A stretch of 63,023 bases of DNA, filler included, from Ginglymostoma cirratum (Eukaryota): NCBI GenBank assembly GCA_024137785.1. It is 4 parts of 4 records of this genome, joined end to end, with 100 filler letters (N's around TTAATTAATTAA, not from the genome) between each part and the next. Parts side by side here need not be neighbours in the genome. Positions count along the whole stretch, not along the records: positions 28,894 to 44,183 come from JAHRHZ010000085.1; 3 more parts are not named here. One strand, 5' to 3'. The notes below the pieces were generated by a model, which did no database searches, was not told the origin of the DNA, and saw nothing but the letters and a program-made list of their open reading frames with translations. How positions within the stretch are numbered: the stretch's first letter is position 1; each line of letters opens with the position of its first letter. Made by a program: the position numbers and the translations under genes. Shown piece by piece: positions 28,894 through 44,183 of this stretch.

Positions 28894-29799
28894 AGCCAAT
28901 CTTTTACATGGCAATGCTCTCCAAGATGTTGGCCCCCATTGTATCTTTGCTTCTTATCCTGGCTGCAGCCCATTCCTGCCCATTATCTCATCCCGTGCAG
29001 ACTCCGTCCCTAACGTATACTCAAAGATAAGTCCAATATCAAGAGTTTTTTTTTAGTGCGAAGTCCCCAAAAGGGGCTGTCTCTTCAAAGCTGATGATAA
29101 ACTAGGTCTTGTAACTCCTGACGTCAAGAAAGGGAAAAGTCAAACAAGAAGGCTGTGCTTTCGGGAGAAAGCGAGAGGTGAGGCGATACCTGGTCACAAC
29201 ATCTACAGCTTGCATGTTAGAACAGACTGTGGGCTGAAGATGAAGTAGCTTGTCATAAAGAGAATCTTGTATGAGTTACGATAATCTTCCAATGCTTTAC
29301 TTTCACTGGAGTCCGCAGCTTCAACAAGAACTGTTCTGATAGAGATCAGTGTTGCCTGCTCCACAAGCTTTAGAATATCATTCTCTCTCAAGTTAGTTTC
29401 TTTTCCCTTTGGTTCACCTTCTCATTTAACACATAATGAGTCAGTAAATGTATTTCAATATGCTTAGGCGATATAATTGGTCATATCTTAACAGTTCTGT
29501 GTGTAAACTGTGCAATGTGTGTTTGTGTTTTTCAATAATCTTAAATGTGTGAGGTCCTGGTTGATGGATACGTCTGGTATGTGAGCAATGTGGGAATGCT
29601 AACAGTTGTGAAATTTAATTTTGCAGCTGGTAGGATTTGAATTCTGACATTGGATATGCTGACATTAACAACTTGTCCAAAGATACTAAACTTCTTGCTG
29701 CACTGAGGATGCAGGAATCTCCACTTCTCACCTTCTGTTCCAAGAAATCCAGTGCACGATTAGAAGTTATGAGTGCCCACTCTGTTTTTTGTTAAGAAT

Positions 29800-30095
29800 G
29801 CCTACAGTGTGGAAACTGGTCCTTTGAACCAATGGCCAAACAAGTCCACACTGACCCTCAGAGCATCTCACCCAGACCCATCCCCCTAATCTACACTATG
29901 GGCAATTTAGCATGGCCAATCCACCTAGCCTGCACATATTTGGGCTGTGGGAGGAAACTGGAGCACCCAGAGGAAACCCATGAAGGCACAGGGAGAACAT
30001 GCAAACTCCACACAGATGGTCACCTGAGGGTGGAATTGAACCTTGGTCCCTGGTGCTGCTGGGCAGCTGGGCTAACCACTGAATCACGATGCTGC
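29800..30095 (-). mobile_element. HE1-type shark SINE
   Basis: tRNA-like head (cagtggttagc..ggttcaattcc), core tgtgtggagtttgcatgttctccc, CR1-like tail. Confidence 0.8.
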
Positions 30096-30699
30096 TGCTT
30101 CACTTTTAGCCATTCTTCAAGGTCAGAGTCAACTACCACAGTATTCCCTGAACCTGCATTAGAATCATTAAATCTTTCCTTAGAATCACAAGTGGATTTT
30201 GCCACTTTCACCCATCCTGCTAACACCTGCACTCATGAAACAACATGGTGATCATTTAGAAATTTTATAAATCAGCGTGCATGTGAATTGGTAAACTGCC
30301 TGAATTAGTTCGAGTGAGTGTAGGTTAATTGTACACCACAATTCCATATCTTTACTCATGACAATCAATCCAAACTCTACAGAGTCTAAGGCAGGGAGTA
30401 CAAATTAGAATTTCTCATTCAATGTAAAATTAGTTTGGAAAGTAAGATAAAAGTAAATATGGGGTATAAGACTGAAAGAAGATAACAACAGAAAACATGT
30501 GTTTACTCCCTTCAATAATAACATTCTGGACCACTGGTGTCTGCAACTGTGTGATCAATCTCCCAGCTATGAGCATGTAGACCATGGACTTTTGCATACC
30601 ATGGCAGAGATGAAGGCAAAGAGGAGAGAGCCTTAAAATACTCAGTGGAACTTAAAATACATAAATGATTCCAAAATATGCCATCTTACTGGTGCTCAG

Positions 30700-31670
30700 A
30701 CATTTGTTATTTGTTATTTACGTAAATGATCTGAATGTGTAAGGCATGATTAGTAAGTTTGTAGATCAAACAAAATTAGGATGCATCATTGATAGTGAAG
30801 AACATTATCAAAAATTACAGAGAGATCTTGATCAGAGGGGGAAGTGGGCTGAGGATTGGCAAATGCAATTCAATACAGATAAGTGTAAGGTGTTGTATTT
30901 TGAAAGTCAAACCATGGTAGGACTTATACAGTAAATGGTAAGGTCCTGAGGAGTGTTGTGGAACAGAGGGACCTAGGAGATCAAGCACATTGTTGATTGA
31001 AAGCAGTGTCACAGTGGAAAGGGTGGTGAAGAAGGCATTTAGCATGCTGGCCTTCATCGTTCAAGGCATTGAGTATAGGAGTTGGGATGTTATGTTACAC
31101 TTGTATAATTCATTGGTAAGGCCACACCTGGAATATTGTGTACAATTTTGGTCACCCTGTTATAGGAGAGACATAGTTAAACTCAAAAGTGTGCAAAGAA
31201 GATTTATAAGGATGCTTCCAGCACTGGTAGGCCTGAGTCATAGGGAGAGTCGGCCAGGATAGGACTTTATTCCTTGAAATGTAGGAGAATGAGTGGTAAC
31301 CTTATTGAGGTGTATAAAATCATGAGGAGCGTAGATGGGATGAATGCATATAATATTTTTCTGAGGAATTGGAATTGAAAACTGGCGGGTGTAGGTTTTA
31401 AGATGAAAGGGGATAGATTTAAGAAGGACCTGAGGGGCAATTTCTTCATGCAGAGAGTGGTGCATTAAGAATGGGCTGCCAGAGAAAGTGGTTGAGGCAG
31501 GTACAATAGCAATTTTTTTTTAAAAGTATTTGGATAGGTACATGGATGAGAGAGTTTAGATGGATAGGGACCAAATGAGGGCAATTGGAACTAGCTGAGT
31601 GGGCACCATGGTCAGCATGGACCAGTTTGTGCTGAAGGACCTGTTTCAATGCTATATTACTCTATGACTC
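30700..31670 (+). mobile_element. CR1 (HER1-like) LINE 3' portion
   Basis: SKFVDQTKLG, LVRPHLEYCVQFWSP; tail tattctctatgactct. Confidence 0.9.
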
Positions 31671-34600
31671 TACTGACAATTACCCCTAAAAAGCTCGTGC
31701 CAAAAGCAGTGTTCTACATTCTTGAGGCATGCAAACCATGCCATAACTATGAAATAGCACTTGCCTACAGTTACCTGACTGCTGCTTATCTTGGTTTTAC
31801 CCAGGGCCACAGAATTCCTGTCTTCATTGCAAATTTGGTTCAAACATGGACAAAAGAGATGAATTCCAGAGATGATGTGAGAGTGACATCCTTTGACATC
31901 AAGGCTATAACGAACTGTGCATGACATCAAGGAGCTTGAGCAAAACTGGAGTCAGTGGCAGTTGGAGACAGACCCTTCCATTGATTAGAGCCATACTTGA
32001 AACAAAGAAAGATGGCTGTGGTTTTTTGGAGACCAGTCATCTCAGCTCCATGTCATGGAAACAAAGGAAATAGAGTGGGGAATAGGGCATTTGGCTCTTC
32101 AAATCTGCTCCACCATTCATTATCATCATGTCTGATCATGCATCTCAATAACCTATTCCTAATTAGCACCACATCCTTCAATCCCTTTGGCTATATCCAA
32201 CTCCTTGCTGAAATCATATAATGTTTGTTCTTGACTACATTGTATGGTTATGAATTCCAGAAGCTCTCCATTCTCCAGGTAAGAAATGCCTCCTTATTTC
32301 AGTTTTAAAAGGCTTATCCTGTATGCTTAGACTGTGATTTCATTGATTCTGAACTCCCCACCTTCAGGAACACATTCCTGCATCTACCTTGTCTAGTCCT
32401 ATTGAATTTTGAGATCCCACCTTATTCTTCCTAACTCCAGCAAATGTAGTCTGAACCATTTTAGCCTCTCTTGATTAGTCAGTTCCACCATCCTGGGATG
32501 TGGTGGAGGAGGGGAGATTTTGAAGCTTGTGAAGTCCACGTTGATACCATTGGGCTACAGGGTTCCCAAGCGAAAGGCTGTTCCTGCTACTTGTTCATGT
32601 ACAACAAGTTCTCTGTGCACTTTTGATATCTATTAGTATTCTCCACACCAGTTACTGGACTTCTAAGTGTCTTTTGCAAATTTCAAAAATGTGGCCCATG
32701 CACCTGTGATGATGAAGTAATACACTTCAAATGCAGCAGTGACCCTGGTTCTCGACTCTGGGCAATATCACTTCATCTACAATTAGTTTTAGGAATAAAT
32801 CTTCTCCACTTCTTTATCTTTACTCCCTTTACTATCCCTTCAATGCAGGCCACCTACTAACTCATTTCATAGAGTAAGTAAAGAGCAACTGTTACCAGCA
32901 GCTAGTAGGTCATTGGGGAAAAAAAAATCAGAAGTCACGTGAGTGTGTTGGTGTGGTCTATCAGTATGGTGGGACGGGGTTGGTCTTTTAACCTCACCAG
33001 TAGAAAGTATTTGGATTAAATCTGCTAAAATGTTGATGGTTGTTTTCGAGGAAACTGAATGCATGCTGAAGGTAAAAGATAACAGGGAAAGGGAAAAAGT
33101 TGGGAATGGTGGGGGGCTATCTCCTTTGCCCAACAAAAAAAAACACCAATCAAATTCAAAAATCGAAATGGCCTCCTTATTAGCTGTATTATTCTTTTTA
33201 ACTGAATCTGTGAAAAAAACAGGGATAATTTAACATAAATGTGTATTTCACAAAGTCCATATCCCATGTACTTCATCAGAGAGGTGCAGAATCCAGATAT
33301 AATAAAATGATGTGAAACATAATCACCTCAAGTTCACGCAAAATAGCAGTTTCATGTGGAAATCTGAATAGCAGACTTCATGAAATTTCTTGACATTTCT
33401 CTATTTTATTAAATTTGTGATATAATAATATTACAGAAGACAGCAGGCATGGAAACTGACATTCAGCCCAATTAGTGCGTCTTGAGCACAACAAAAACAG
33501 AAATTGCTAGAGAAACGCAATATGTCTGGCAGCGTTTTGGACACAGCAGAGTTTACCTTTCAAGTTCAACGAATTTCCTTTAAGCTTCTGTTACCTATTC
33601 TATCTCTGCCTTGATTAAATCAAAATGATTAAAATTCATCAAGAATAATGTTCTCATTTGAAATCTGCGATGTCTAGTCATCAGTATGTGCTTTTTTTTT
33701 AGTTTGAGGTGTTCTTCCAATCCCTCCAGTCCACCGATTCCACTAGTTTCCAATCACCAAAGTCAAGCCTACTCTTTTAAAATCAGTTAAATTGTATGAA
33801 ACCTGTCAAGTCAAACTGAATCCTCCTGGTTTCAAGGTGCCAGGCACTTAAAGAAATCAAATGGGCAAATTTAAATTAACAAGCTCAAATTAAATTGTTG
33901 TTTTGAAAGTTAACAATGCACTCCAGCCTCTGTGGTGCCCAGTGCTCGTTGAAAGCCTCTAGTGCACACTGCATGCCCCCTCTCCAAGGTCACCTCGGCA
34001 TGGACATAACCACAAAACAGCAACAGGTAGTCAGGCCAAATTACTTTGTCAATCACCAATATCTGAAATTTATGGCCGTTTTGCTAAGATGTTTATGGCC
34101 ACTTAGGCAAGTACAAGAAACAGACTAACTTATTGGTCTACAATGCCTACTTCTTAACAATGAAAATTACATTAGTTGCTAGGATTCCCGGTGGTACTGC
34201 AAGTTTTTTTTTTCTCTCTCACCTAACCAATATTACGTATAGTAATGCTTCAACATTTGCTTTCCATAGATGATTTTGAAATGCTCTGAAGTAATCACGT
34301 GTATATGGACCAATGATTTATTTAGTCATCTTTGACTTAGATTAATTTATTAAGTCTGTTCTGTTTTCTGTATTTAAATGTAATGATCACGTTCCTCATC
34401 ACACTGTCTGCCATTACATCAACCTGCTTGATATTCCGGGCAAATGCTAAATTATTCATTGTAAGCCTTGCTGCCTATCTATCATTATTATCCCGCCTAT
34501 TCCTTAACGTGTCTATCTCCATTCCAGACTCCCTAAATTTTAAATTGGTTCCCCTTGATGAAATTTTGCTATGTCCGTGTTTGTTTCTAATTTCACAGTT

Positions 34601-34684
34601 TCCTTTTGCCTTACAAATTACGTTTTTAAACTTGGTTTTATTTTGCCTCCCTACCATCAATCTTTTCACAGAGTGATAGAAACA

Positions 34685-35460
34685 ATCATAGAGTTATAGA
34701 GTTTTAACAGCATAGAAAAGGGACCTTCAGCACATTGTATTCATGACAAAATAACATCAAATTGTACTAATCTCAATTTCCAGCATTTGATCTGCAGCTT
34801 TGTATGCTATGGCATTTCAAGTGCTCATATGAATACTCAAAATTCTTGAGAGTACCTGTCTTTATCATGTTTTTATGCAGTGAGTTCCAGATACCAACCA
34901 CGTTATGGTTGAATAAAAGTCCTTAAATACATTCTAAACCTCCTGCTGTTTACTTTAGAACAGATTCCACTGGAAGTTAGACCTTCTGTAAGGTGGGGAT
35001 GGAATGGGGGGGATTTCTCCTATCTACCCTATATCTGTACACTGCAGTTACAGCAACCTCAATCTACCCGGTCTCTCTTCATAGTTGCTTAGTTCCAGCC
35101 CAGCCATCATCCTGGTCAATCTCCTCTGCACCCTTTCTTCTGCAGTCACATCCCTTTTCTATAGCGTGACAAATAGAACTGCAAACAGCACTCCAGTTTT
35201 GGCATGAATTATATTAGAAACTGCTCTATCATAACTTCTGTGCTCTTGTTTTCATTGCCTTGACTAATAAAAGCAAGTAACCCATATTACTTCTGAAATT
35301 GATTATCTACATCTCCTGTAGCCTTGAAGAAGCTCGGGATATGCATACCAAGGTCCTCTGAAGTTCCATACTTCGTAGGATTCTACCACCCAACATGTAT
35401 TCCCTTGTCTTGTTAATAATCCCAACTGCAATTCTTCGCATATTACCTCCTATCCATGTG
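34685..35460 (-). mobile_element. Decayed CR1 LINE 3' portion
   Basis: Reverse-complement similarity to the other CR1 3' ends in the window. Confidence 0.7.
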
Positions 35461-37419
35461 CTTAATGTATGATTCTTTTGCCTTTTCACTTTTTCATGGA
35501 TACCTATTAATGTTCTTCCCTGTTAACAGAACTAGTTTAAATATTTTCTATTTTTGTTCTGCATCATTGTGTTCATTTGTTGCACATTTTGTTTTCCCAA
35601 GTTCTATTCTCAGTCACTCAAAATCAGATATGTTTTTTCCAAAGTACTAATATGGTGTTTATCACAGCTATGTCCCACTGTGTGAGCACCATATATCTTT
35701 TTAGATTGTGGTCACTATTACCTCAATGTTCCTCTACTTGACATATTTCCTTTGGGTCATTCTTATATTATTAGATCCAAAAGTGAATTTCCCTCCTCTG
35801 TCTGTGGGTCAGAAACGTTTCCCCTGCATACTTTCGGATCCCTTTCTCTTTTCGCTTTTACCTACCTTGCTGTCTAATTCATATTAAAGGGAATGAAGTC
35901 CCCATTCATATTATTCTGTCTTTTACTAAACACCGAGATTGATCTCAATATGTATTCACACTCCTCCTGCCCTCTGCGCAGACTGTGCACATACACACAT
36001 TCTCTCTCTCTCTCTCCTCACACACACACACTTTCTCCCATCCTCACAAGTAAAGGCTCTCTCTCTGCCCCCCTCCCACTCACACACACTCTCTTTCCTG
36101 TCTCTCTCACTCACACACACAAAAACACAAACACACACACACAACACATGCGAAAACATACAAAAACACATGTGAATCTATGGGGTGAATTTATATTTGC
36201 AGAAATATTTTATTATGTACAAAAAGCATATAATTATGTAGACAGTCAGTCGATATGGCATTTAAGAAATTCCTACTTTAGAAACAAACCAGCCTGACTC
36301 CAAACTAAAACATAAACAGATTCTAAACAAGGTCTCACACCTAACATGCATTGCCTGGCCTAAAATGTCACCTCTTCTTTACACTGATAAAACCTTTACT
36401 CCTCTCTGTACCATGACTTGAAAGGATTTTGGGGATTGACATACACATATTAATCAATTAAAATCTTCTAACTGGTTAAAGATTTAACAGCATCTTAGGT
36501 TTGTTTAGTACATCCTCATCAATGGTGTGAACCTTTGATCTTTTACTCATAAATCTGTGACTGCTACTTACTCTCTCACTAAAACCTGAAGACAGACTAC
36601 GGCTCTGAAAGCATGTGTTTTCAAATAAACCTGTTAGGATATAACCTGGTGTCATGTGATTTCTGACCTTGTCCACCCCAGTCCAACACTGGCACCTCCA
36701 CATCATTTCCAACGAGTAGTTCCAGATTTGATCTTTACCAACAGTTGAGGTCATAGGATCAATGTTGGGGAAGAGTGGAAAACGGCTTCACAAGCGCTTT
36801 CAGAATTTGTGAAAGCTAATCTATCAGAGATAACTGGAAAAACTGAAAAAAATGTCATGGAACTGATTGCAAGAACAGTCAATTTGAATCACAAAACCAG
36901 AACGTGACTCATTAAAAATCTCCAGTATTTAGTTCAGAACAGGTGAAGAAGCAATTCAAGTTCCTAATATATGTTTCACAGTGTAAAGGTGTCCAATAAA
37001 TTGTTTCTGCCTGGTTGCATGTTATTGAAATAAGTTGGAATTTAGAATGTGTGGAGAATTAAGATCCCAAAAACAGAATTACTGACCAGATAAATCTTTT
37101 CTTTAAAAAAAATGCCAAAATATCATTAGAATTGCATTAATGAGAGGGATGACAAAGTGATAATTTTAACTTTTATTTGTAAGAGAGCATTTCAGGCAGT
37201 CTTAGCACTTCATCAGAAATAACCTGGAGTGTTAAGCAAAGTTCTGCCTTGTTTGTGACTTAAATGCAAACAGGGAGAAAAACAGGGTTGCTAAATAGAA
37301 TCTATTTTCACCATGTGGAGATTCAAGAACTGGGGGCATTGTCTAAAAATTAGAGCTAAACCAATCAAGTGAGATGCTCAGAAGCACTTCTAGACATGAA
37401 GGATGGTAGAGGTTTGGAA

Positions 37420-37985
37420 CTTGAAATGGTTCAGAAAAGATTTACAAGGATTTTGCTCTGATTGGAGGGTTTGAGCTATAGAGAAATGCTCAATGGGTTG
37501 GGGCTTTTTCCCATGAGAGTCAGAGGCTGACGAGTGATCTTATGAAGGTTTACAAAATCATGAGGGGCTTGGGTAGGGTGACTAGCCAAAGTTTTTTTTT
37601 TCCCCAGGGTAGGTGCGTCCAAAACCACAGGACATGGTTTAAGATGGGAAAGATTTAAAAGGGGCCTGGGGACAACCTTTTCATGGAGTAGTGGTGCATG
37701 TATGGACCAAGCTGCCAGAGGATGTGGTGAAGGCAGGTACAATTACAACATTTAAGTAGGATTTGGATGGTTACATGAATAGGAATGACTTAGAGGGATA
37801 TGAGCCAAATGCTGACATATGTGACTAGATTAGTTTACGATATCTGGTCAGCGTGGATGAGTTGGACTAGAGGGATATGAGCCAAATGCTGACAAATGTG
37901 ACTAGATTAGTTTACGATATCTGGTCAGCGTGGATGAGTTGGACTAGAGGGTCTGTTTTCTTGCTGCATAACTGTAGGACTCATG
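37420..37985 (+). mobile_element. CR1 3' end with internal 77-bp tandem duplication (37791-37944)
   Basis: CR1 3' sequence; tagagggatatgagccaaatgctgac..gagttggac occurs twice. Confidence 0.8.
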
Positions 37986-38679
37986 GGCCAAATGGGTCCA
38001 TTTGTGTGCTGTACAGACTCTATGTCTCTCCAAATGGCAGTGGGTACTGGGCCAGTGTAAAGTTTAAATATGACATAGATGTATTTTGTAAAGTGAAGGC
38101 ATTGAGGGTTAAGGGCCAAAGGCAGGTTTCTGAAGTTAGGCCTAAATCAGCTGTAATCTCACAGATTGGCTAGACAGGCTAGAAGGACTGAATGGCCTGC
38201 TCCTGTATCTATATTCCTATTTACCCGTGGATAACGTCAAGTTAAACTGTGTCTCACGATAAGGTGTATGCATGTCGTGGAAAGTTAAATATGTTTGTAT
38301 AGAGCTAGATCGATTATAGTTGGTAAGACAGCAAAATAATCAACATTGATCAATGAACCAATAGGCCTATTCATGGAAAATTTGCATGTAGAGATGTTAT
38401 TTAAAGTCAATTTAAGAATACACTTTTAGGACGGCATACCCTTATGTTAATTAGTGTAGTTTTTGGTTGATCAAATATAAACACACATAAAATGCGTAAC
38501 GGTGGGCAACCAAAATATTTTGCTTATATAAATGTTAATCAATCAGTTGAATCAAATTCATCAAACAGGTGTGTTATTCCGCACATACGAACTGTAATCA
38601 AGTACATCAAAACACATAGTTTTCAAGTATGAGTGAATACCAGGCGGTATATATTAGTTTCTAGGGCACACACTCCTTA

Positions 38680-39005
38680 GTTGCACACATGCCACGCTTT
38701 CTATTGACAGAAGCTGTTAAAACGGAACTACATCTGTAGTAACAGGTTTGAATCGTTTGGAAAGTCAAGACTGATTAGGTTTGCGACTGAACCACGGAGG
38801 TAAACATGAAACACGGTTTGTTAATTGTATAACGGTTCTGCTTTGCCAAAAACCTTTGTTAACAGGAAGCCTGGCTGCAATATTTCTGCTTAATCATTTG
38901 CCCTTGACACCAACACGTTTCATTTGATTTCACAACACATCACCAAAGGCTTCACAAAGAGGTCATTAAGAATGGTTTGAGGTGAACTGTGAGATATAAT
39001 GTTGG
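38680..39005 (-). pseudogene. Possible heavily decayed V-domain exon, head-to-head with gene 2
   Basis: After acceptor ..ccacag|: ANIISHSSPQTIL..KPLVMCCEIK*..QPGFLL..SVANLISLDFPNDSN/CYY. V-like motif order but with several stops. Confidence 0.35.
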
Positions 39006-39311
39006 CTGTGGACGCCAGTGTGAAAAGATTGAGTCCATGTCAAGAATATGTTATTTTCTCCGAGAGGAAACGAAAGTTTCGAGAGACTATGAGGAGTCAC
39101 GCGGATAATAGGGCTCCAATGCTTGTTTCACACCTCACTCGATTCGCGACTTTCTTTTCTTCTCGTGTTCCTTAAACCGTGTTCTGTTTTTTCTTCGTGG
39201 ACTTGACGAAGTTTTATGACTAAAACAGCAATTCATTCGCTTTCTTGCTACCTGCTTAATGAACGATTGGACTTGCTCTCTTGTTCAGAATTTGTTTCAT
39301 GGTTTTGTTGA

Positions 39312-39377
39312 GGTTGGGGAAGAGGGGTTGGGGAAGAGGGGTCGGGGGAAGAGGGGTCGGGGGGAGGGCGGGGGGAA
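39312..39377 (+). repeat. G-rich short tandem repeat (GGGGAAGAGGGGTY)n
   Basis: Three to four units followed by further G runs. Confidence 0.8.
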
Positions 39378-39660
39378 GCACAAATGATCTCACTAGGCCG
39401 TATCAACGTTTGTTTTAAATGTCATACGAAGAATTCTAATCACCATCTGAAGGAACTAACTTCAATCTTTCTGTTCCGAAACGTATTTTCAATTACAACG
39501 AGTCGGCTCACTAGGTCACACTATGACCCCGATTTGGAAGGAACGCCTTCAACTCTCTGAGCGCTTTGAAGTGATCTCGAGATGACCCGCTGCCACATCA
39601 TATTCAAGTACAAGAGCAATTCATTGACTCAGTGCGCTTCCTCGCAGCAAGGTCTTGTAA

Positions 39661-39718
39661 ATGATGTTTCCAGTCTGTGTTCTTCGGTACGTGTGGTTCG
39701 GAGGGACCGTCTGCATAG
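39661..39718 (+). CDS. Non-rearranging VJ-C1 gene 2, leader exon
   Basis: MMFPVCVLRYVWFGGTVCI plus a phase-1 donor ATAG|GTATCG; 110-nt intron to the V exon. Confidence 0.7.
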
Positions 39719-39828
39719 GTATCGTATACTCATATTGCTTCTTCACCCAGGTCCTGCCCTCTCCATCATTGTCTACCATTTGTCTCATTCGTTGACTTTT
39801 CATTTAATTGTATAATTTTTCTTTACAG

Positions 39829-40149
39829 CTGTTGTTAACACTCATTTCCAAGTCTTCCAGGCTCCTGAAAGCGCGAACGCCCCAGTAGGTTCAAACGTTA
39901 CGTTCTATTGCACATTTCCCATTTTTCAAGATAACTCCGACGTAGAGGTCTTTTGGTGGAAACTTGGCGAAAATACATTTCTGCACAGAACCTCAAACAG
40001 CAGGAACGTATTTCACTTTTTTAAACAAGGTGGCGGCTCCTTTCATCTCCTGAACATCAGTGCACGGGATTCCGGGGTGTACGTCTGTGGAGTGAAAACC
40101 CTGGGAAACAGCATTGTAAATGGAACTGGCTCAACGATGAACGTTTTCG
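39829..40149 (+). CDS. Non-rearranging VJ-C1 gene 2, single-exon V domain including G strand (missed by the ORF track)
   Basis: Acceptor tttttctttacag| and donor TTCG|GTAAGT; 321 nt, open. (A)VVNTHFQVFQAPESANAPVGSNVTFYCTFPIFQDNSDVEVFWWKLGENTFLHRTSNSRNVFHFFKQGGGSFHLLNISARDSGVYVCGVKTLGNSIVNGTGSTMNVF. No RSS. Confidence 0.92.
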
Positions 40150-41099
40150 GTAAGTGCTACTGGTTGAAGAAAGTAACTTGAAATATTCCGTATATTTAAA
40201 TTTTTGCAGCGTGCTCTGGAGTTAATCTTCAATTTCCTGAGCAGTACTGACTTGAATGGATTATAAACTGTGCGAGACTTCTTCTTCTCTGTTCAGATTA
40301 ATTTATTGTAAAATACAATGAGTGTCAAATCTAAAATTTAAAGGCAATTGTTACAATGACGTCTGTAATGTTTAGCCATATTAACCAATTCTGAAAATCA
40401 GTGTAACTCACGTTCGGCCATTTAAGAACCGATCTGTAATATCAATATGAACGGACTCGTAAATTTTTTTTAAGTGAAAAGTTTGGCAAACAAGCATCGA
40501 ATAAAATCCAGAAAAGCCTATTCACCCCTCATTTATTTGTTAAAATGCGTAATTACATATTATTTATCTTGAAAATCAGAGTTTTGTCACACCTTTAGAA
40601 CATGAGCAGTAAAATTTCAGAATTCGAGTCCGGTGGGGTACGAGATCATAGTAAACAATATATTGTTTACGCCCTGAATACGGGTTTAAATTCTTCCAGA
40701 TTCATTATGCTCGCTGCTTTATTTCTTCGGCATTGATATAAGAGATAAAAATGCAAAAGCAATGATGTTAATCTTCTTTTGTTGCTCGTGTTTTGATCCA
40801 GCTCAAAATAGGAAATAAACTGTGTATGCTAACTTCTGTTGGGAACTTATTTAAACCTAATAACTCTCTCTAAACTGAAGGAGTCCCGGCGTTTAATGAC
40901 GAAAGTTTCCCTCCCTGCACCAGCAAATTTAGAATCAACAGCACAGATCAGGTGACGTTAAAGAGTCAAAACGCGCCGGTCTAGCAATAAATTATTGCCC
41001 AATCACAAATGTTATTCCAACCAGATCTGGGATTTAGCTCAATACGTTGTGCACGTTAGTGCTGGATTCACAGGGCTGGACATCCCCATACAGGAAAGA

Positions 41100-42165
41100 G
41101 GGACATCCAGAAGGCCTTTGACAAGGTGCAGCACAGAAGGTCGCTGAATAAGATTACAACCTTCTTAAGCGCAAGGTACTGGCACTGATAGAGGATCGGC
41201 TGGCTGGCAGAAAGCAGAGATTTTGGATAAAGAGATCTTTTCCAGGGTGGCAGCCGGTGACTAGTGGACCTCAACAGGGATCAGTGTTGGGACCAAAGCC
41301 ATTCACGTCTTATATTAACAATCTGCATGAGCGCATTGTTGTTATGTTTGCAGATGACAAAGATAGGTGGAGTGGTGGGTAGTGTCAAGAAGCAGGAAGG
41401 CTGCAGAAGGACTTGGATAGTCGAGGTGTGTGGGCAAAGAAGTGGCAGATGCAAAACAATTGGGAAAGTGCAACGTTTTGTGCTTTGGTAGGAAGGATAG
41501 CAGCATAGACTGTTTTCTGAATGGGGAAAGGCCTCAGAAATCTGAAACACAAAGGGCTATAATGCAAGAGCAGGGATGTACTGCTGAGTCTGTATAAGGC
41601 TCTGGTCAGACTGCAGTTGGAATATTGTTCACAGTTTTGGACTCCATATCTAACGAAGGATGTGCTGGTGTTGGAAAGGTTCCAGAGGAGGTTTATAAGA
41701 ATGATCCCATGATATAGTGCTTGTGTTACACAAGCTGTTGAGGATTCTGGTGTTGTACTCAATTGAGTTTAGAAAGATGATGGGGGAAATCTCATGAAGC
41801 TTACAGAATACTTAGGGGCCTGGAAAGAGTGGGTATGGAGAAGATGTTCCTTTAGTTAGAGAGTAAAGGACCTAAGAGCATACCCTCAGGGTGAAGGGAT
41901 GACCCTATATAACTGATATGAAGAGGAATTTCATGAAGAAATTCAGTAGGTGGTGAATCTGTGGAACTTATTACCACAGAAGTCTGTGGAAGCCAAGTTA
42001 TTGAGTGTATTTAAGACAGAAGTAAATAGGTTCTTGATTGGTAAGGTGATCAAAGATTACTGGGAAAAAGCAGGAGAATAGGAGTGAGAAATATCTCAGC
42101 CATGATTGAATGGCAGAGCAGACTCAATGGGCCAAATTGTTTGATTCTGCTCCTTTATCTTGTAT
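41100..42165 (+). mobile_element. CR1 LINE RT/3' portion in the V-C1 intron of gene 2
   Basis: DIQKAFDKV, FADDK and LVRLQLEYCSQFWTP remnants. Confidence 0.85.
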
Positions 42166-43611
42166 CATCTCTGTTAGAAATTCCCACTTTGGACCAAGTG
42201 ATCTGCACTGTAATACAGGTGCTGAATATTTTCATAATAAATCAAAGTTGCCAAGAAAACTTCAGCAGGCATGGTTTTATTTATATATATTACAACCTAC
42301 ATAATATTCGGGCAACAGCCTATTTGTGACTTTCACATTACAAATGTATTGGGTTGCAAACTGCAAACCTATGGGCTATATCAAGAGAAAGGTTCGTATT
42401 TTCTATTATGAGAATGTTGTGTGTTTCATATCGTTGAAAGCCACACATTGAAATGTGAGCCCTGTGTCTGTCCACAGGTGCTGCTAAACGTGTTGAATAA
42501 TTTAGTATTTTCTGGTTTTATTTCAGATATCTAGCATCCACTGGATTTTTCTTTCCTATATTTTATATATTATATTGCACGTTTTACTGCAACACACTGG
42601 ATACATTTTACTGAGCCACCAGAGAGATCTAATACTCCAGCAAATTCAATACTGAAGAAGGGTCACTGGACTCAAAGCATTAAATCTACTTTCTCTCACA
42701 GATGTTGCCAGACCTGCTGAGGTTTTCTAGCAATTTGTTTTTGTTTCTGCATCAAATCTGTTGTTTCAGTTGTGTGATGTATTTATTATTTTGCAATGCA
42801 GCACTTTGATTCTTTTTCTGCTGGGGTGCTGACAAAATATCATCTGCCTAATGCAGTAACAAATGTGCTGTAACATAGTGCTGCATATGTGCTGTGTTAT
42901 AAGACAAACTTACCTTTGAAATTTACTTTAAATCATATTTTCTATTTTGCACCAGATAGTTTCACTTATGCTGCAAATGTTCATCAGTTTGTATCATTTA
43001 GGCATCTACTAACCCTCTAAAGAGATTAACTGAAATGAAATTACTTTGAGCATTTCCTGTTAGACCACAGTTATTGTTTTGTAATAAGATGTTTGCTATA
43101 CATACAGAACTTATCTTTCACTTTTTCATCATATTTTAATATTGAATATACATCAATACCATAACATCGGTGAATTGTATTAGTATGTGTTTTTAAAATG
43201 GAAGCGAGTTACCACTTTAGTATGATATTCCAACGATAAATCTATGCAGCTTTAGCTATTATATGAAAAGTAATGAAATGCCTGCTTTGGAAATTGGGAA
43301 TAGCACAGTTCCAATCTGGTAAAATGAAAATAATGCAACACAAAGGACATTTTCACAATCCGTTCTGTAAATTTATTCTGATATAAATGTATGATATCCA
43401 GTTAAAGATCTTCAAAAAATTTTGGAACTCACAGAATGAGCAGAAATATCTTTTTATTGTATCGTGAATAAAATGTTGTAGTAACTATTATAGGCCAAAA
43501 ACACTTTAATACACTCTACCAAATTATATCAAATAAAAGGAGGACAACTTCCCACTCATGACCAAATAATCTAAATATTAAACCTTACCTGTTTGCCTTT
43601 TCTTCCTACAG

Positions 43612-43908
43612 TTCCTCCAACTCCCCTACGGATTTTCTCCAAAGTATCTCCAAACTCCTCTCTTCTGGATCTCGTGTGTGAAACAAATTACTTTTATCCA
43701 GAGACGATCATTTTCAAATGGTACAAAGATGGAATTGAAATCACCATCCACCCAGAAGCAACCAAAGAATTAAACATAGAAGGGCTTTACAAAGTTTCCA
43801 GCCTTTTGAAGTCCATCCAGAGTAAAACTGTTTATACCTGTCAAGTATCTCACATCACCCTCCCGTGTCCAGCTAATTCGACATTTATCGTTCCAATTTC
43901 TAAACAAG
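43612..43908 (+). CDS. Non-rearranging VJ-C1 gene 2, C1-set Ig constant domain exon
   Basis: Acceptor tttcttcctacag| and donor CAAG|GTACTG; 297 nt, phase 1-1. LVCETNYFYPETIIFKWYKDG...GLYKVSSLL...YTCQVSHITL carries the C1-set motifs C-x4-FYP, W, and YxCxVxH. Confidence 0.92.
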
Positions 43909-44183
43909 GTACTGTGCTGACAGCTTTACAAACATAGCCGAATTGAAAGCGTAAATTGTGTCAGTGACATTAAGAAACTTGCTGGCATATTGGTTATATG
44001 GTAATGAAACTTCAGGCTGATGCTCTGGGAACGGGTTTGAATCTAACCAGGAGGATTAAACTTCAGGCTGCTCAATTCACGGGAAAATGTTGCCCCTGCT
44101 AGTCACTCTCAAGTCTCCTGAATGGAGAAAGAATGGCTGGCTGATAATGGAGATAAAAGGTACTGCAGATGCTGGAGAATCTG

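Follow-up and report, generated by a model that had tools for sequence, protein, structure and literature searches.

A non-rearranging V-C1 gene of Ginglymostoma cirratum as a probable member of a multigene receptor family of cartilaginous fishes

Immunoglobulins (Ig) and T-cell receptors (TCR) are thought to have arisen from non-rearranging VJ-C1 genes, and sharks are the oldest lineage with both Ig and TCR systems. PRARP, reportedly described from bony vertebrates by Fu et al. in 2019, is said to combine a non-rearranging VJ domain, one C1 domain, a transmembrane (TM) segment and an immunoreceptor tyrosine-based inhibitory motif (ITIM), and to be associated with the major histocompatibility complex (MHC). 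Non-rearranging VJ-C1 genes have also been reported as UrIg and UrIg2 (PMC12227049, PMC10751288); UrIg is secreted, has three C1 domains and is MHC-linked, while UrIg2 has nine or more C1 domains and is linked to the Ig/TCR complex (PMC12227049). Here we describe a gene of Ginglymostoma cirratum (assembly GCA_024137785.1) that shares with these elasmobranch genes (PDB 9DMX) a non-rearranging VJ exon, a split leader and a C1 exon immediately following. It differs from them in that its orthologues have one C1 domain, a TM segment and ITIM-bearing tails, in place of at least three C1 domains. The gene lies on the plus strand at positions 39661–43908 of the window, the whole 63,023-nt stretch of DNA presented, and the piece analysed was 28894–44183 (JAHRHZ010000085.1).

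The locus was interpreted, at a probability of roughly 0.8, as the 5′ part of a germline-encoded, non-rearranging type I membrane receptor gene from a multigene cartilaginous-fish family. The single gene is an ordinary member of that family and not a unique relic of an ancestral receptor. Its kind, the non-rearranging VJ-C1 immunoglobulin superfamily (IgSF) receptor, is already known, as the first-pass annotation of the interval had noted, and the family is widely predicted and inconsistently named. The locus is not a germline-joined Ig light chain (IgL) or TCR gene, and it is no clear orthologue of SIRP, B7-H6, NKp30, tapasin or UrIg/UrIg2.

The first-pass annotation had proposed an intact leader-V-C1 exon series with matching phase-1 junctions, and this was borne out. 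All three exons are open, without stop or frameshift, and are bounded by AG/GT sites, with a pyrimidine tract before the V acceptor and a C1 acceptor of equal quality; all three junctions are in phase 1, with split codons G/CT (Ala) and G/TT (Val). The peptide encoded by the leader exon (Table 1) is most of a split signal peptide, and its pattern, V-x-x-[FY]-[IV]-W-x-x-G-x-[TV]-C, can be aligned with the leader of the Heptranchias perlo orthologue P0156. The leader exon splices directly onto the V exon, and the spliced V-C1 junction, ...STMNVF-V-PPTPLRIF, matches ...TIKVF-V-PPTPLCIL of a second orthologue, P0155. It had also been claimed that the V exon continues past YVC into a G strand of its own (NGTGSTMNV) and a splice donor without a recombination signal sequence (RSS). 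A heptamer/spacer/nonamer scan agreed, finding no RSS adjoining the V exon and a nearest weak match at 42802, deep in intron 2. No paralogous Ig-like exon was found elsewhere in 28894–44183, intron 2 included, by tblastn with both Ig exons. The exon structure and the lack of an RSS thus uphold the description of a germline-encoded, non-rearranging gene with a VJ-type V domain and a C1 domain.

Sequence searches were run exon by exon. The V exon carries the hallmarks FYC27, WW41-42 and YVC86 and a J-like G strand, NGTGSTMNVF, with an N-G-T sequon. As first reported, WYQQ and FGxG are missing; WWKL and NGTG stand in their place, and the GxG bulge is retained. In Pfam, the V exon matched V-set at E = 4e-8, with Ig_3 equal and I-set weaker. 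The C1 exon carries LVC22, W36 and YTC76-QVSH and matched C1-set at E = 1e-9 (39 bits against a cut-off of 21). Together with the structure models and searches, these results confirm a short V-type domain followed by a true C1-set domain.

Structure models were in agreement with these assignments. The AlphaFold2 model of the V domain, built from the family alignment, had a predicted local distance difference test score (pLDDT) of 88.7 and showed strands A, A′, B, C, D, E, F and G, with C′ scant and C″ absent. Its neighbours in Foldseek and VIA were the shark IgNAR V domain (VNAR; Z 14.7), NCAM Ig1, TCR V, PD-1, CD79b and NKp30, all of them between Z 14.7 and 12.9 and so within some 1–2 Z units of one another. 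Identity to these structural neighbours was 11–28 %, highest for TCR V (26–28 %), and TCR and Ig V domains overall fell at 20–28 % in VIA. As modelled, the V exon is a short V/I-type VJ domain with no close solved relative. The C1 model (AlphaFold2, pLDDT 87.4) was matched mostly by C1-set domains, namely MHC class II beta2 (Z 13.5), SIRP-gamma domain 3 (13.4), Ig constant domains, UrIg2 C3 (12.6 in VIA), IgNAR C domains and beta2-microglobulin, with the C domains of the B7 family and butyrophilins further down the list. Searches of PDB with a V-only profile, or with the C1 exon, were dominated by multi-Ig proteins and antibodies, so that their ranks were not informative; the ESM Atlas returned generic V-set and C1-set clusters only, plus one SHPS-1 fragment cluster for C1. 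A germline-joined IgL or TCR was ruled out by motifs, identity levels and tails, and the earlier argument against a recent join of this kind therefore stands.

The distribution of the family was determined from database proteins. When the V exon was compared by phmmer with 1.84 billion representative proteins, 244 matches reached E <= 1e-3 and 81 reached E <= 1e-10, the best being XP_067905015 of Heterodontus francisci (P0001, 73 % identity) and XP_078066431 of Mustelus asterias (P0002, 70 %). Proteins of the same build were found in about 20 species, covering several shark orders, skates, rays, sawfish, an electric ray and the chimaera Callorhinchus. Among the roughly 35 of 150 listed V-C1 matches whose names were looked up, all were chondrichthyan and none was an Ig or TCR. 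NCBI names for these proteins included tyrosine-protein phosphatase non-receptor type substrate 1-like, signal-regulatory protein beta-1-like, tapasin-related protein-like, immunoglobulin lambda-1 light chain-like, NCR3 ligand 1-like, class II beta chain-like and CD276 homolog. Names scattered this widely indicate a family without a clear counterpart among named proteins. Within each species the listed members lay on contigs of one size, with the exception of one Mobula protein on a small unplaced scaffold, suggesting a cluster on one chromosome. In the searchable literature, no description of a shark SIRP-like or V-C1 ITIM family was found.

Domain mapping of the fetched proteins identified at least 92 predicted proteins with the family C1 domain in about 20 chondrichthyan species. 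The usual build is a leader, a V domain with NGTG(S/T)xLxV, a C1 domain opening with VPPTPL, a TM segment and a tail; one skate protein, P0042, is V-C1-C1. Several RefSeq models without C1 have a V domain identical to that of a V-C1 protein from the same species (P0105 and P0186, P0061 and P0062, P0050 and P0175, P0039 and P0183), and the C1-less Callorhinchus protein P0184, named NCR3-like by NCBI, sits among V-C1 genes in the V tree. In Narcine, P0190 is the complementary model, a C1-TM-tail of the same gene as P0021. Because the V domains are identical, the C1-less proteins are taken to be C1-skipping isoforms or model variants and not a separate V-only family. The FcRn-like name of the Narcine model might have hinted at a location next to MHC class I; this was rejected, P0190 being the family C1-TM-tail of the P0021 gene.

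To place the gene within the family, maximum-likelihood trees were built, one from 110 V domains and one from 94 C1 domains. In both trees the locus fell in the same five-member clade (Shimodaira–Hasegawa approximate likelihood ratio test, SH-aLRT, 99), together with proteins of Heterodontus (P0001), Heptranchias perlo (P0156), Mustelus (P0002) and Scyliorhinus torazame (P0155). The locus has the V and C1 of the family in one gene, the VPPTPL start of C1 and a consistent position in both domain trees. Identity to the clade partners was 66–73 % for V and 57–67 % for C1; a resemblance this close (57–73 %) to proteins annotated in four shark genera cannot be due to chance. The clade membership also indicates a subtype older than the split between squalomorphs and galeomorphs. 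The orthogroup proteins share the leader/V/C1 layout of the locus, the NGTGSTxxV strand and the VPPTPL start, and are themselves automatic predictions under four unrelated names. The BC loop, CTFPIFQDNSDVEV, is near-invariant across four shark orders, while the C′-D region and part of the FG loop vary. A loop conserved to this degree suggests a conserved ligand.

Tails were compared among the family proteins with C1. A TM segment was recognisable in 73 of the 92, and 40 of those 73 had ITIM-like motifs or motifs like the immunoreceptor tyrosine-based switch motif (ITSM). Typical ITIM-type tails read LTYAALDL, then TEYAEL or SEYSEV some 20–30 residues on. Tails of 30 residues or fewer were found in 18 of the 73, about nine of which have an Arg-containing TM edge, (H/P/S)RF(I/V/T)L or PRL, with the Arg outermost. 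Such a mixture, in which inhibitory forms stand beside short-tailed ones with the same ectodomain, is the pattern of paired receptors. In the orthogroup, three of the four known members (P0002, P0155 and P0156) have long ITIM-type tails and P0001 has a short one. The C1 exon of the locus closes with ...PISKQ/G, like ...PISNQG of P0155 ahead of the connecting piece; P0155 and P0156 (...FSKLG) run on from this point into a TM segment and tails with LTY(V/A)(S/A)(L/F), TEYA(Q/E)L and INYTDV. An innate receptor, one of the possibilities offered at first pass, fits orthologues that are type I membrane proteins with ITIM/ITSM-like or short tails. The architecture of the family would also match the one reported for PRARP.

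The short-tailed proteins P0001, P0008, P0162, P0163, P0165–P0167 and others share the TM motif (H/P)RF(I/V)LxFLVILIL(T/I)III with an outer-edge Arg. This motif is common to lamniform, carcharhiniform, orectolobiform and heterodontiform sharks and is a candidate adaptor-pairing signature.

Table 1. Exons and introns of the V-C1 gene, in window positions
Feature	Start	End	Strand	Length (nt)	Codons	Phase	Splice sites	Remarks
Leader exon	39661	39718	+	58		phase-1 end	donor gt after	ATG at 39661; encodes MMFPVCVLRYVWFGGTVCI
Intron 1	39719	39828	+	110			gt...ag	
V exon	39829	40149	+	321	106	1 to 1	acceptor ...ctttacag, donor gtaagt	
Intron 2	40150	43611	+	3462				orthologue proteins join V straight to C1
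C1 exon	43612	43908	+	297	98	1 to 1	acceptor ...cttcctacag, donor gtactg at 43909	
Intron 3, start only	43909	44183	+					piece ends at 44183

Several described families resemble the locus closely enough to be weighed as its true affiliation. It is possible, though doubtful, that the locus belongs to the shark NCR3 (NKp30) family of Kinlein et al. 2021, and that the family has hence already been published under that name. NKp30 (3NOI, 6YJP) likewise has a short V/I-type domain whose J-like G strand can be N-glycosylated, and the predicted C1-skipping isoforms of the family, among them the NCR3-like Callorhinchus protein, look NKp30-like. NKp30 3NOI ranked fifth in Foldseek (TM-score 0.76), and phmmer against PDB matched NKp30 at E = 0.037 in the F-G region only. 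The G strand of NKp30 also has a sequon, like the N-G-T of the family strand, and the V tree divides into about eight deep subclades, where the Kinlein abstract is said to give eight highly divergent NCR3 subtypes. However, NKp30 is a single V ectodomain with no C domain to set against the C1 exon of the locus, and in VIA it stood at rank 43 (21 % identity, Z 13.0). UrIg has been called a novel non-rearranging VJ-C1 gene and NKp30 listed only as a VJ gene (PMC10751288), which suggests that shark NCR3 was not regarded as V-C1. Map positions also argue against this assignment. In the white shark, five NCR3-labelled genes lie between AIF1 and DDAH2 at ~102 Mb of NC_054485.1, the gene table of which ends at 115.6 Mb, and in the catshark one NCR3-labelled gene lies between DDAH2 and AIF1 on NC_052158.1 (PMC10751288 supplement; Verissimo, Ohta and co-authors). 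The white shark family members P0008 and P0178 are on a 193.5-Mb contig and the catshark members on a 198.8-Mb contig, and catshark LOC119970986 (P0050) was not in the gene table of the MHC chromosome NC_052158.1. P0155 of S. torazame shares a chromosome with P0165, and P0167, the S. canicula relative of P0165, is on the 198.8-Mb contig. In both of these species the family therefore lies elsewhere than on the MHC chromosome, and the MHC-chromosome NCR3 genes between AIF1 and DDAH2 are other loci than its members. A cartilaginous-fish co-orthologue of the SIRP family, with V-C1-C1 cut to V-C1, was judged unlikely. The two share a non-rearranging V domain with a J-like strand, a C1-set domain next to it and ITIM-bearing and short-tailed paired forms, and SHPS-1-like or SIRP-beta-like is the commonest NCBI name among some 60 name-checked members. 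Family tails pair an LTYAxLDL-type with an xEYAxV/L-type motif, as does the tail of SIRP-alpha. The V-C1-C1 skate protein and the tied-top VIA score of SIRP-gamma domain 3 (4I2X) point in the same direction. When a profile of 30 full-length family members was compared with PDB sequences, SIRP-alpha (2WNG) domain 3 gave the best score for a single C domain (49.7 bits, with the alignment starting at VPPT, against 23–37 for Ig and UrIg2 constant domains). For the V-C1 unit, however, SIRP-alpha domains 1-2 (68.6 bits) were equalled by Ig kappa V-C (70.8) and lambda V-C (69.8). In addition, C1 identity to SIRP is only 22 %, the family V is of the short V/I type, SIRP has two C1 domains where family members usually have one, no SIRP V was among the best 50 V matches in VIA or Foldseek, and no bony-vertebrate SIRP was seen among the name-checked HMMER matches. 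Improbable as well is a B7-H6-like (NCR3LG1-like) ligand gene, in which the product would not be a receptor. B7-H6 (4ZSO) likewise has a V and a C1-type domain followed by a TM segment, its C domain (4ZSO_E) gave the highest structure-based C1 identity (33 % over 88 residues, Z 11.6), and several members are named NCR3 ligand 1-like by NCBI. Yet B7-H6 was only 45th by Z among C1 matches and its V domain was not among the top V matches, with PD-L1 appearing weakly; in none of the searches did the V domain of the family look B7-like. It carries a J-like GxG strand, which is not known from B7 V domains. ITIM-bearing and short-tailed paired forms further point to a receptor role. A tapasin/TAPBPR-like gene was rejected, the orthologues being 266–338 amino acids long with V from about residue 22 and no large N-terminal domain. 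The first-pass annotation had named a germline-joined IgL or TCR copy, or a clear orthologue of SIRP, tapasin or B7-H6, as outcomes that would refute its reading, and neither was borne out.

Other alternatives concern the history and state of this one gene. The first-pass annotation had singled it out as a possible relic of the receptor that preceded RAG, and that special status did not hold, since at least 92 proteins in about 20 chondrichthyan species have the same V-C1 unit. A closer form of the idea, that the non-rearranging VJ-C1 gene split by the RAG transposon has a surviving relative in this locus, has the predicted architecture in its favour, a V domain with its own G strand and then C1, all in phase 1, with the GxG bulge kept and with TCR V providing the top V identities in structure-based alignment. 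It was nevertheless regarded as very improbable. The same architecture occurs in SIRP, PRARP, UrIg and UrIg2, and the published candidates are UrIg and UrIg2, which are linked to the MHC and the Ig/TCR complex (PMC12227049). The ITIM or short-tail signalling of the family is typical of innate paired receptors, its V domain is of the short V/I type without C″, and its conserved sequon occupies the G-strand bulge, the presumed site of V-V pairing in antigen receptors. The comparisons gave no evidence for closeness to Ig or TCR beyond that of other VJ genes, and because UrIg2 V-C1 (55.1 bits) scored under IgL and SIRP-alpha, nothing places the family nearer the antigen-receptor ancestor. A decaying or truncated family paralogue, that is, a pseudogene, also has a low probability, and several of the observations behind it weigh in addition against a functional receptor gene. 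No other member of its clade has so long a terminal branch as the locus (0.23 in the V tree, 0.27 in the C1 tree); the E-F loop of its C1 is 3 amino acids shorter than in the orthologues, and its V has YVC where the family has YYC. In LPCPAN of C1 there is an additional cysteine, Cys85 (43866–43868), at a site that is A, V or I in the orthologues; without a partner in the C1 fold, it could link to another chain by a disulfide, or the change may simply be specific to the lineage. None of the orthogroup proteins has this C1 deletion, Cys85 or YVC. The piece stops at 44183, short of the TM and cytoplasmic exons; the closest V match, P0001, is short-tailed; and ligand binding and signalling are predictions from motifs. 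The locus could accordingly be a divergent paralogue or be drifting to a pseudogene. Decay is opposed by three open exons with canonical splice sites, by the retention of all structural hallmark residues and by confident AlphaFold2 folds for both V and C1.

For the membrane receptor that we favour, a mode of action can be proposed. The membrane-distal V domain, judging from its sequence, would bind a conserved and probably self ligand, with the C1 domain acting as a spacer. Members with ITIMs may recruit SH2 phosphatases and so damp leukocyte activation, as their motifs predict, and the short-tailed Arg-TM members may serve as activating or decoy partners, in the manner of SIRP, KIR and LILR-type paired receptors. 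Glycosylation of the conserved N-G-T in the G-strand bulge would hinder V-V pairing of the antigen-receptor kind.

Outside the cartilaginous fishes, the nearest V matches were multi-V proteins of turtles and lizards. They include P0005 of Chelonia mydas, annotated as an NCAM2 isoform; two reptile matches, P0102 and P0139, are named IgSF3-like and titin homolog. In the multi-V proteins P0005, P0009, P0014 and P0046, each V closes with a J-like NG(S/T/L/N)GTxVTI strand. The multi-V proteins of this reptile type may constitute an uncharacterised family of VJ-repeat receptors.

The surroundings of the gene were also inspected. A decayed remnant resembling a long interspersed nuclear element (LINE) or reverse transcriptase (RT) was recognised by eye in intron 2 at about 41000–42100 (+), with broken open reading frames (ORFs); the one intron-2 fragment scanned, 41430–41594, had no Pfam match. 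A second decayed LINE/RT-like remnant lies at 30746–31262 (+), where 30746–30931 gave a weak match to Pfam RVT_1 (E = 0.017). ORF fragments of these remnants read like RT motifs, for example KWAEDWQMQFNTDKCKVLYF, and the other fragments scanned had no Pfam match. Upstream of the gene, an intergenic 77-nt unit is present twice at 37791–37944 as a perfect-register tandem duplication with 99 % identical copies. A CA/TC-rich low-complexity stretch at 35890–36300 produces long spurious ORFs on both strands (THTHT, SLSLS and CVCVC peptides).

The locus alone has no bearing on the question of RAG invasion, and its interest lies with the family to which it belongs. Besides UrIg and UrIg2, sharks keep a family of VJ-C1 membrane receptors that is large and conserved and whose tails are inhibitory or putatively activating. 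We tentatively suggest, as an idea somewhat short of an even chance, that this family may be an undescribed, MHC-unlinked paired receptor system found throughout the cartilaginous fishes, with ITIM and short-tailed Arg-TM forms built on a VJ-C1 unit. If true, cartilaginous fishes would have in it their functional equivalent of SIRP, KIR or LILR-type receptors, so far concealed by at least four unrelated automatic names. With a V domain like those of NKp30 and TCR, and a C1 domain closest to the C1 domains of B7-H6 and SIRP, the family could sit near the root that these families share. Because leukocyte paired receptors of cartilaginous fishes are almost unknown, its members are reasonable candidates for checkpoint receptors of natural killer (NK) or myeloid cells in these animals.

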